A DNA stretch of 64,000 nucleotides from Orbicella franksi (GCA_964199315.1 OZ116709.1:8618001-8682000); one strand, 5' to 3'. Numbered from the stretch's first letter, positions 8,952 to 10,445 are shown. Numbers and translations are program-made. The notes: a model not told the origin generated them from the letters alone.

Positions 8952-10445
8952 ATGGCAAAAGAAATAAGCACTTTGGCCGGTGCTTTCGCAACTGTTGGTA
9001 CAGCAACATTAGCTGGTGTTAACTTCGGGCAAGTGAAAAAACTCAATGGTGCCGTAGAATCATGTGCAAAGTACACCGGTAAATCATTTATGGAAACGTC
9101 TGTACGCCATATTGGTGAAACAGCAGGAAAGGGAGTTGCCACAGCAGCCACCGCAGTTGCAGCAGGCGTCACTTTTGGCCAAGTCGATGCGCTTAATGAA
9201 GCCGTGGTAACATGCGCTTAAGGCACTGTGGAAAGTTCAAAAGCAGCGGCCAAAGCGACGGCGAGTACCCTTAACGATGCTGTCGACGGGGTTCCTGGTG
9301 TAGGTCACGCTAAAGGAGCCATCCATTACCTTGTTGGAGATGAAATCGGCGGCGACAAAGCCATGAAATCCGCTTCCAGGACTGTCGGAGTGATTGCTGG
9401 TGGTGCTGGTGGTTTTGTCGTAGGTGGCCCCGTGGGTGCTGTAGCTGGAGGAATCGCAGGAGGTGCAGCAGCGGACGCTATTATATCTGGTGCTGATTCT
9501 GCCGTTCACAAAGAGTGGCGTCCGCATGGCCAAATAGCTGCATGGGACGCCCTTGCAAACGCAAAGACCGACGATGAGATCATCGATGGAGTTATTGGTG
9601 TTCTTGTAACTCCTGCTTTTGATGCACTCGGTGGAATTAAGGCTGGAAAACGTTTTGCGCCAAAAGCTGGTAAGCCGCGACCAGCTTCAGTTGCCAAGCC
9701 TAATCTTCTTAGACCGCCAAAAGCAAATCAAGCGCTCAAAGCTGGCAGAGGATCAGGAGGACCGGGAGGGCCAGGAGGGCCAGGAGGAGCGGGGGGCTCA
9801 GGAATGGGTGAACGACCAGGATTATCCATGACCCACGCAGAAGGTTTTCACCAACACTTTGGAATGAGTGATGAGCAATTTGCAACTTTTCAAGATCAAG
9901 GAAATGGGACGTTCATTGCCACCCAGGGCTTTGATTTTGTCCATGCAGTGTTGACAACCAACGATCACCCAACAACTATAGCGATCAACACAGCAACTCA
10001 ACAACCTGTGCAAGCAAGTGGCGCAGGCGCATTGTGGCAAACGTGTACAGGAAGCCCTATCGGCTCAAATCCCTGTGCTGTTAGCAACTGTACCAATATT
10101 AACCGTGACTGTTCAGTGCATCCTCAACATGCAGGTGCTACAGCCCATGTTTACCTAACAAGCCAAACACCAAACCATCAAATAGAATACATGGTGCTTA
10201 TGCCAACGTGTTGTGGTAATAATAATCATTTGCAATGTCACAACAATAATACGAACTTCCCCTTGGGTGGTCAAGAAGCCAATGTTTTGCAAGCAAGGCC
10301 TGGTACTCCAGTGATGTTCATTCGAATTGACAGAAACACAGCTGGGCGTAAAGGTGGCAAGGGGAGAGGAAAAGGAGAAGGGGGATCATTTGGACCACCC
10401 TTTGGCCACGATGGAGGCGACGGCAATAGCGGTGCTGCTCATTAA
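8952..10445 (+). pseudogene. Intronless glycine-zipper protein with a Cys/His-rich (putative His-Me/HNH-like) C-terminal domain, interrupted by one in-frame TAA (9219-9221)
   Basis: ORFs 8952-9221 and 9228-10445 are in the same frame, separated only by TAA-GGC-ACT. Start context is strong (aaaATGG). An internal repeat (AGVNFGQVKKLNGAVESCAK vs AGVTFGQVDALNEAVVTCA*) places the stop at a Lys position. No other disablement in 497 codons. It could be a null allele, a sequencing error or a split gene. Confidence 0.75.

Follow-up and report, generated by a model that had tools for sequence, protein, structure and literature searches.

An interrupted single-exon gene of Orbicella franksi and its apparently undescribed family of glycine-zipper proteins with variable C-terminal domains

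A 64,000-nucleotide stretch of the Orbicella franksi genome (GCA_964199315.1, OZ116709.1:8618001-8682000), from now on referred to as the window, contains a single-exon gene at positions 8952 to 10445 of the plus strand. Based on sequence alone, this gene was originally predicted to encode a polymorphic-toxin-like protein with a conserved N-terminus, a linker and a swappable nuclease-like tip, possibly acquired horizontally. The locus thus raises the question of what kind of protein is encoded here and whether this copy is still able to produce it.

The encoded protein consists of a repeated head, a glycine-zipper core, a low-complexity linker and a C-terminal tail. Across its relatives the core is conserved, the tails are diverse and reassorted, and orthologues are under purifying selection, while the copy in the window is broken by an in-frame stop. 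The reading we favor, and consider reasonably probable, is that the gene, with its single exon, represents an apparently undescribed, mostly animal family of modular eukaryotic proteins that follows the logic of conflict effectors, and that this particular copy has been broken. Functionally, it is probably a membrane-anchored conflict effector that has been inactivated or truncated at this locus.

A conserved core is joined to many unrelated tails

Searching with the part of the protein encoded downstream of the stop yielded 25 proteins, and a profile built from these yielded 196 matches, which define a eukaryotic and mostly animal family. Named hosts include a stony coral, an oyster, a limpet, a bdelloid rotifer, four nematode genera, two springtails, an ostracod, a fungus gnat, two teleost fishes and Symbiodinium. 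The taxonomic spread is patchy and some hosts encode several copies per genome. All 121 proteins that were fetched share a helical core of about 130 residues, encoded at 9267..9656 in the window, and are matched nearly end to end by a hidden Markov model (HMM) of this region (alignment A1). The core starts with the nearly invariant motif DG.P..GH.KG.IHY..GD..GG..AMK.ASR, alternatively written GHxKGxIHY..GD..GGD.AMK.ASR, followed by the glycine zipper and two more helices. An AlphaFold model based on an alignment of 101 members is all-helical in the core with a predicted local distance difference test (pLDDT) score of about 90. No significant match to the PDB was found when the head and core model was searched with Foldseek.

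Past the core, sequences no longer align. Tails of at least 100 residues, of which there are 85, fall into 23 unrelated blastp clusters, and one of these, tail cluster 3, is found behind both kinds of head present in the family. Tabulating the C-terminal domains of homologues thus favors the swappable-tail layout that had been proposed, with one core in 121 of 121 proteins and many different domains following it. The largest cluster comprises 28 proteins from a rotifer, molluscs and fishes and carries a nearly invariant CAE...RCxNC motif pair (alignment A7). This motif pair is a signature of zinc-dependent deaminases; no member of the cluster matched a Pfam deaminase at E ≤ 1 and no match was found among PDB sequences. 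The tail of the Bradysia protein passes the Pfam cut-off for Exo_endo_phos (29.8 vs 24.5 bits) and an ostracod tail scores 21 bits against the endonuclease/exonuclease/phosphatase family. Weak matches of single tails include ART-PolyVal (5e-3), HicA (1e-3) and PBECR1, a barnase/EndoU/colicin-like nuclease family (2e-2), while the remaining tails did not match anything. Profiles of the deaminase-like, tail-3 and HicA-like clusters, as well as of P0009 and P0101, returned nothing significant among PDB sequences. For most tails, a toxin-like nature is only putative.

One relative with a deaminase-like tail, located at 10001-12209 of locus L008, continues into a long acidic repeat. A 137-residue ORF (open reading frame) overlaps its 3' end in another frame and is probably an effect of the repeat.

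The designation of the family as uncharacterised has held so far. No Pfam or NCBIfam model covers it, and a limited literature search, which is not proof of novelty, did not find any published description. Two pieces of the window protein returned nothing significant from Pfam, NCBIfam or PDB sequences, and for 101 relatives NCBIfam and PADLOC matched only glycine-rich stretches (PdsO, FAD-binding loops, LeoBC).

The window copy carries one in-frame stop

In both the ORF listing and the raw sequence, the gene can be read from an ATG at 8952 to a terminal stop at 10443-10445 without the need for introns, and all four parts that had been described are present where they were placed, including the stretch 10035-10226 and the His codon at 10146. 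The predicted 497-codon intronless frame was therefore correct in its coordinates and its lack of introns, but an in-frame stop had been overlooked. This single stop, without any frameshift, divides the gene into ORFs of 89 and 405 residues in the same frame. The window does not contain a second copy of the gene. A Logan contig from an independent sequencing run of the same species (L002) agrees with the window at 99.85% of 2,043 ungapped bases, differs from the window gene by only two codons and carries the same stop. The stop is thus a real allele and not a read error, as both samples examined contain it.

Six close relatives (P0002, P0003, P0031, P0033, P0034 and P0070) share the same head, core and tail with 65-89% identity over shared parts. 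They are uninterrupted from the usual family start, except for P0003 whose called ORF begins a few residues later. At 680-807 residues, they are longer because their linkers carry roughly 190-310 more residues than the linker of the window protein. Intact orthologues are represented by P0002 (691 residues), P0031, P0033 and P0034. On either side of the gene, the contig of P0002 (L001) aligns collinearly with the window at 72-91% nucleotide identity. Upstream of the gene it carries an exon for a P2X receptor and downstream one for IP_trans, so P0002 is orthologous to the window protein and comes from a related species. Among named proteins, this combination of head, core and tail is found only in P0087 from Desmophyllum pertusum, which is 49% identical and is encoded by a single exon according to its NCBI annotation. 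No synteny was detected within 10 kb between the window and the loci of the D. pertusum protein and P0070. The called ORFs of P0003, P0004 and P0006 begin after the usual family start, which may reflect further breaks or contig ends.

Ratios of nonsynonymous to synonymous substitution rates (dN/dS) were calculated piece by piece with the Nei-Gojobori method, comparing the window gene with two orthologues and the orthologues with each other. In comparisons with the window, dN/dS was 0.26-0.29 for the head, 0.21-0.26 for the core, 0.50-0.57 for the linker and 0.22-0.26 for the tail. Between the orthologues, the corresponding values were 0.13, 0.18, 0.50 and 0.37. The linker (0.50-0.57) is the least constrained part of the gene, and head, core and tail of the orthologues are under purifying selection (0.13-0.37 outside the linker). 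As dN/dS is low among orthologues, the gene is kept by selection in this group, so the break in the window copy must be recent, or tolerated, or not fixed. It looks recent.

It could be argued that the locus still makes a working product in spite of the stop, through readthrough, a downstream start or an intact allele segregating in the population. The presence of a single break without frameshift, dN/dS values of 0.2-0.29 relative to the orthologues on either side of it, and the difference of only two codons between the two samples would all agree with this. However, both available samples carry the stop and the linker is strongly shortened relative to all relatives. In addition, the next in-frame ATG after the stop lies within the core, so a downstream start would cost the protein its head and part of its core. 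We regard a working product as rather doubtful. Loss of function is the simplest reading of the window copy, which most likely gives no full-length protein in this species.

Head and core form a putative membrane module

The head of the window protein, referred to as type a and encoded at approximately 8958..9215, consists of two copies of a repeat of about 37 residues rich in Ala, Thr, Gly and Val. The two copies self-align with a score of 80, while 2000 shuffled sequences scored 24.7 on average and 46 at most, with 0 of 2000 reaching 80. AlphaFold predicts the head to be helical with low confidence. Two kinds of head can be distinguished in the family, namely the Ala/Thr/Gly-rich repeats of the window type in 24 of 121 proteins and a PVVSQ.KS.VQ...GD.EGA..TQ repeat pair in 86 proteins. 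Of the 117 proteins that start with Met, 49 carry the N-myristoylation consensus MG...[STAGCN]. Family members begin with MGxxxS-type sequences or with MA or MD, none of which resemble signal peptides as judged by inspection of the starts.

The glycine zipper within the core (9381..9485) spans about 35 residues, mostly Gly, Ala, Val and Ile, with a central GGP and basic residues on both sides. Seven overlapping GxxxG and seven [GAS]xxxGxxxG motifs are found within 45 residues. As summarized in PMC4470416, citing Kim et al. 2005, glycine zippers pack membrane helices tightly and occur in channels and membrane-active toxins. The linker that follows the core (9657..9827, alignment A2) is basic, Gly/Pro-rich and of low complexity. 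It is the shortest of its group, with close relatives carrying Ser/Thr/Pro-rich repeats as extra sequence and the L001 linker containing 578 bp without a counterpart in the window.

A motif of the form N-P/S-N-x-A-L-N is found one to four times in the type-a linkers of P0002, P0007, P0009, P0031, P0033, P0034 and P0087, as well as near the start of P0126, a protein that lacks the core. A pattern search of the window linker did not find it. Judging from its sequence, the motif may be a processing or binding site.

In a different explanation, the family would be related to C19orf12, a glycine-zipper protein of mitochondria and the ER (endoplasmic reticulum), and would serve housekeeping or regulatory functions at organelle membranes, with the tails being ordinary regulatory or metabolic domains. 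In favor of this, recurrent but weak matches of the zipper to the C19orf12-like family PF20721 are seen in 8 of 101 members at E ≤ 0.01 and in 24 of 28 at E ≤ 1 (best 4.5e-4), the membrane protein C19orf12 contains a double helix that is similarly rich in GxxxG (PMC4470416), and orthologues of the window gene are under purifying selection. However, all matches are sub-threshold, with the best reported score of about 17 bits falling far under the Pfam gathering cut-off of 30 bits, and they cover only the low-complexity zipper. Similarly weak matches of the zipper are found to MccV, the RTX (repeats-in-toxin) N-terminal domain and PdsO. Further, patchy spread, several copies per genome in some hosts, 23 unrelated tails and the broken gene in this species are difficult to reconcile with a housekeeping role, which we consider unlikely.

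The tail of the window protein is an orphan domain

The tail (9828..10355) is a mostly β domain of about 175 residues that is rich in Cys and His and includes the stretch 10035-10226 for which a His-Me nuclease had been suggested. When the window tail was used alone in a phmmer search of 1.84 billion representative sequences, 23 matches were obtained, many of them fragments. A profile search of a larger database added only unnamed proteins. Members of the tail family (alignment A4) conserve a His within F.HA, a TT.DR motif, a Trp, several Cys, the ATAHVY strand and PTC. The Gly/Lys-rich low-complexity end of the protein that follows the tail (10356..10442) is modeled mostly with low confidence, with pLDDT below 50 at model residues 182-187 and 200-210.

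Four ORFs (P0124-P0127) encode the tail only and several of them begin just before the domain. Most are found on short contigs, where upstream exons may have been missed or genes may be broken. P0126 is located on a 579-kb contig (L005) and has no core-coding sequence within 6 kb upstream. Based on these sequences, the window-type tail domain appears to exist outside the core architecture as well.

A confident AlphaFold model of the tail based on 26 sequences has a pLDDT of 81.7 and a predicted template modeling score (pTM) of 0.82 and contains ten strands and five short helices. Only some local features of this model are compatible with the proposed His-Me (HNH-like, ββα-metal) nuclease. A strand containing the invariant His (109-115) is followed by a second strand (126-132) and a helix (139-144), conserved Cys residues are located before and after these elements, and Asn residues are found at the start of the helix, similar to zinc-stabilized HNH motifs. 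However, hmmscan of 19 tail-family members did not detect a Pfam family of any nuclease superfamily at E ≤ 1, with 0 of 19 matching the families of the His-Me superfamily, and the tail-family profile did not match any PDB sequence. Foldseek searches of the model did not yield a match in the PDB (best E 0.3, TM (template modeling) score below 0.2) or BFVD, with best E-values of 0.3-0.9 across these searches and that of the head and core model, and a phage HNH endonuclease appearing only as noise (E 2.6, TM score about 0.1). Additionally, distant members carry a CxxC after strand 2, the second Cys of which is missing in the window protein, P0002, P0003, P0031, P0033, P0034 and P0122. We therefore consider a His-Me nuclease tip highly improbable. 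The tail of the window protein is a narrow orphan domain, rare, rich in Cys and His and mostly β, for which no match was found in the PDB, BFVD or Pfam. The His, Asp and Cys residues that it conserves hint at either an enzyme or a zinc-binding module.

The locus is of host-like composition and syntenic in a related genome

The gene stands out from its surroundings by its base composition, as noted in the original prediction, with a GC content of 0.47-0.52 across 9001-10500 compared with 0.35-0.43 in the flanks. This difference is real but not unusual, given that the GC content of the gene (0.503) is similar to that of other exons in the window (0.445-0.549). GC content at third codon positions (GC3) is only 0.349, compared with 0.392 for the window overall, so the excess stems from the first and second positions of codons for Gly and Ala, as is common in Gly/Ala-rich coding sequences, and does not point to a foreign composition. 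No relatives of the core were detected by pattern and tblastn searches in 185,579 bacterial and archaeal species genomes (one per species) or in IMG/VR.

Recent horizontal acquisition from a bacterium or virus, which would explain both the missing introns and the raised GC and would fit with a single exon amid intron-rich neighbors and a patchy family that includes lineages known for foreign genes (bdelloid rotifer, springtails), is scarcely credible in view of the lack of core relatives in the bacterial and archaeal species genomes and IMG/VR, the exclusively eukaryotic origin of named relatives, the host-like GC and GC3, the syntenic position in a related genome at a synonymous divergence (dS) of about 0.15-0.27, and a coral relative that has the same head, core and tail at 49% identity.

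The neighboring genes are indeed rich in introns. A membrane-associated phosphatidylinositol transfer protein is encoded by a multi-exon gene (13768-30881, plus strand) that begins 3.3 kb 3' of the single-exon gene on the same strand and is also its neighbor in L001. Its IP_trans exons are located at 13.8, 23.1 and 24.3 kb and its DDHD exons at 28.9-30.9 kb. Further downstream, a multi-exon T-box transcription factor gene (47151-56544, plus strand) includes an ORF at 47151-47681, at the end of which the T-box domain starts, and a Ser/Pro-rich ORF at 55948-56544.

Upstream of the gene, a tandem array of four copies of a unit of about 1,329 bp (3535-8860, 91-100% identical) ends about 90 bp before the ATG. 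The array was found by repeat search, as its unit exceeds the period limit of TRF (Tandem Repeats Finder). Each copy includes the sequence that forms the proximal 5' flank of the gene and the unit is single in L001. The array may represent a promoter region present in four copies, or else a satellite local to this site. On the 3' side, a polyadenylation signal of the AATAAA/ATTAAA type is present at 10710. A short interspersed repeat is found just 3' of the gene and in an intron of the neighboring gene (10832-10871 and 30932-30967; also 11079-11112). The upstream array and this downstream repeat explain why the short-read contigs L002 and L003 end at the same places. The Logan contigs were also considered as transcript evidence and rejected, with both contig ends coinciding with repeated sequence. 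At the start of the window, a region of strongly negative GC skew (302-1000, -0.24 to -0.51) contains a His/Thr/Pro-rich repetitive ORF (302-715) and a short match to L001. An Rfam search of the whole window did not return anything significant.

A probable conflict effector held at the membrane

We propose that head and core would anchor the protein on the cytosolic side of a membrane, leaving the tail in the cytosol. Attachment from the cytosolic side is suggested by the absence of signal-peptide-like starts, the frequent myristoylation consensus and the basic residues flanking the zipper. As these residues are found on both sides, they would fit a re-entrant hairpin which, together with a lipid anchor, would hold the protein at the membrane. 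The core may also oligomerize there and would carry the variable effector domain. Conceivably the module may also move the tail to the other side of a membrane, which the delivery role originally suggested for the N-terminus would require. Such a protein could act in cell-autonomous defense at membranes, as a suicide effector or as a selfish toxin. A role in conflict fits the family because a fixed membrane-targeting module is combined with unrelated, partly nuclease-like tails, the distribution is patchy and the gene can be lost.

Several points weigh against this proposal. Membrane topology, myristoylation and any toxicity are deduced indirectly, and the window copy itself begins with MA instead of MG and thus does not have the myristoylation consensus. 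Only one tail carries a database-certified enzymatic domain, all others being orphan or sub-threshold. Further, no conserved partner or immunity-like ORF adjoins the gene in the window, L001, L008 or L009. Finally, the taxonomic spread is based on about 20 named proteins, with many matches being metagenome or Logan ORFs.

A bolder version of the conflict-effector proposal would have animals and some protists possess a polymorphic-toxin-like conflict system of their own. A self-inserting, often myristoylated zipper would anchor reassorting toxin domains that modify nucleic acids or proteins, or move them across a membrane, and the genes would have spread between eukaryotic lineages as single-exon cassettes. 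The roles of such a system would be antiviral suicide in a cell-autonomous manner, competition between colonies on contact, or selfish inheritance of the toxin-antidote type. We consider this scenario speculative and improbable.

In bacteria, effectors with a constant head and a variable tail are a hallmark of conflict, and Crinkler-type proteins extend this to some eukaryotes. If the favored reading of the family as conflict effectors is correct, it would represent a second, structurally unrelated architecture of this kind, extending from corals to fishes and widening the catalogue of immune and selfish effectors in animals. About two dozen uncharacterised tail domains would become candidates for new enzymes, and the zipper module, whose pattern is related to that of the disease protein C19orf12, would be placed in a comparative context. 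The message of the O. franksi locus itself is more modest, namely a recently broken copy with an orphan tail.

Comparison with known systems

In bacterial polymorphic toxins (PMC3482391), as in the family described here, a constant N-terminal module and a linker precede a variable C-terminal domain drawn from unrelated folds. Variability of the C-terminal domain on a conserved N-terminal region, which is characteristic of polymorphic toxins, is seen here as 23 clusters in 85 proteins behind one core. Nuclease-, ADP-ribosyltransferase- and deaminase-like tails are found in both (PMC3482391), and in both the same tail can occur on different heads and, as it appears for the present family, alone. 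In contrast to the bacterial systems, the present family is eukaryotic and its head and core do not have bacterial relatives. Pfam and NCBIfam did not detect any secretion-system trafficking domain, and in place of a signal peptide many members carry a myristoylation consensus. An adjacent immunity gene is likewise absent from the four loci inspected, though a eukaryotic partner could be encoded elsewhere. For most tails, no relationship to toxin domains that have been catalogued could be detected.

Eukaryotic Crinkler-RHS-type (CR) effectors were reportedly described by Zhang and colleagues in 2016. The account given of them in PMC5889660 resembles the present family in that they are eukaryotic and widely but patchily distributed and combine a constant header at the N-terminus with enzymatic domains that vary at the C-terminus. 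They are mentioned in free-living eukaryotes as well (PMC12957317). Unlike in CR effectors, neither the pieces of the window protein nor the 101 relatives contain a Crinkler or ubiquitin-like header detectable by Pfam, and the header is instead a helical glycine-zipper module without signal peptide. Because the defining heads or trafficking domains and the immunity gene are missing, the family cannot be assigned to either polymorphic toxins or CR effectors.

With C19orf12-like proteins (PF20721; PMC4470416), the family shares a long zipper with a central GGP-type turn, predicted paired membrane helices and soluble helices on either side. The density of seven GxxxG motifs in 45 residues is comparable to the motifs described in PMC4470416, an agreement at the level of motifs only, as family members score under the 30-bit cut-off of PF20721. 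Unlike the multi-domain, patchy and variable proteins described here, C19orf12 is a small single-domain protein without a variable tail that is found one-to-one in animals.

The zipper also recalls bacteriocins and toxins in which it is the membrane-active part of a killing protein, namely Caulobacter CdzC/D (PMC5380434), microcin V, whose Pfam family MccV is weakly matched by the present family, and the T7SS (type VII secretion system) toxin TelE (PMC10434224). These are small, secreted bacterial peptides or proteins in which the zipper itself is toxic, whereas in the family described here the zipper is conserved and a separate domain varies.

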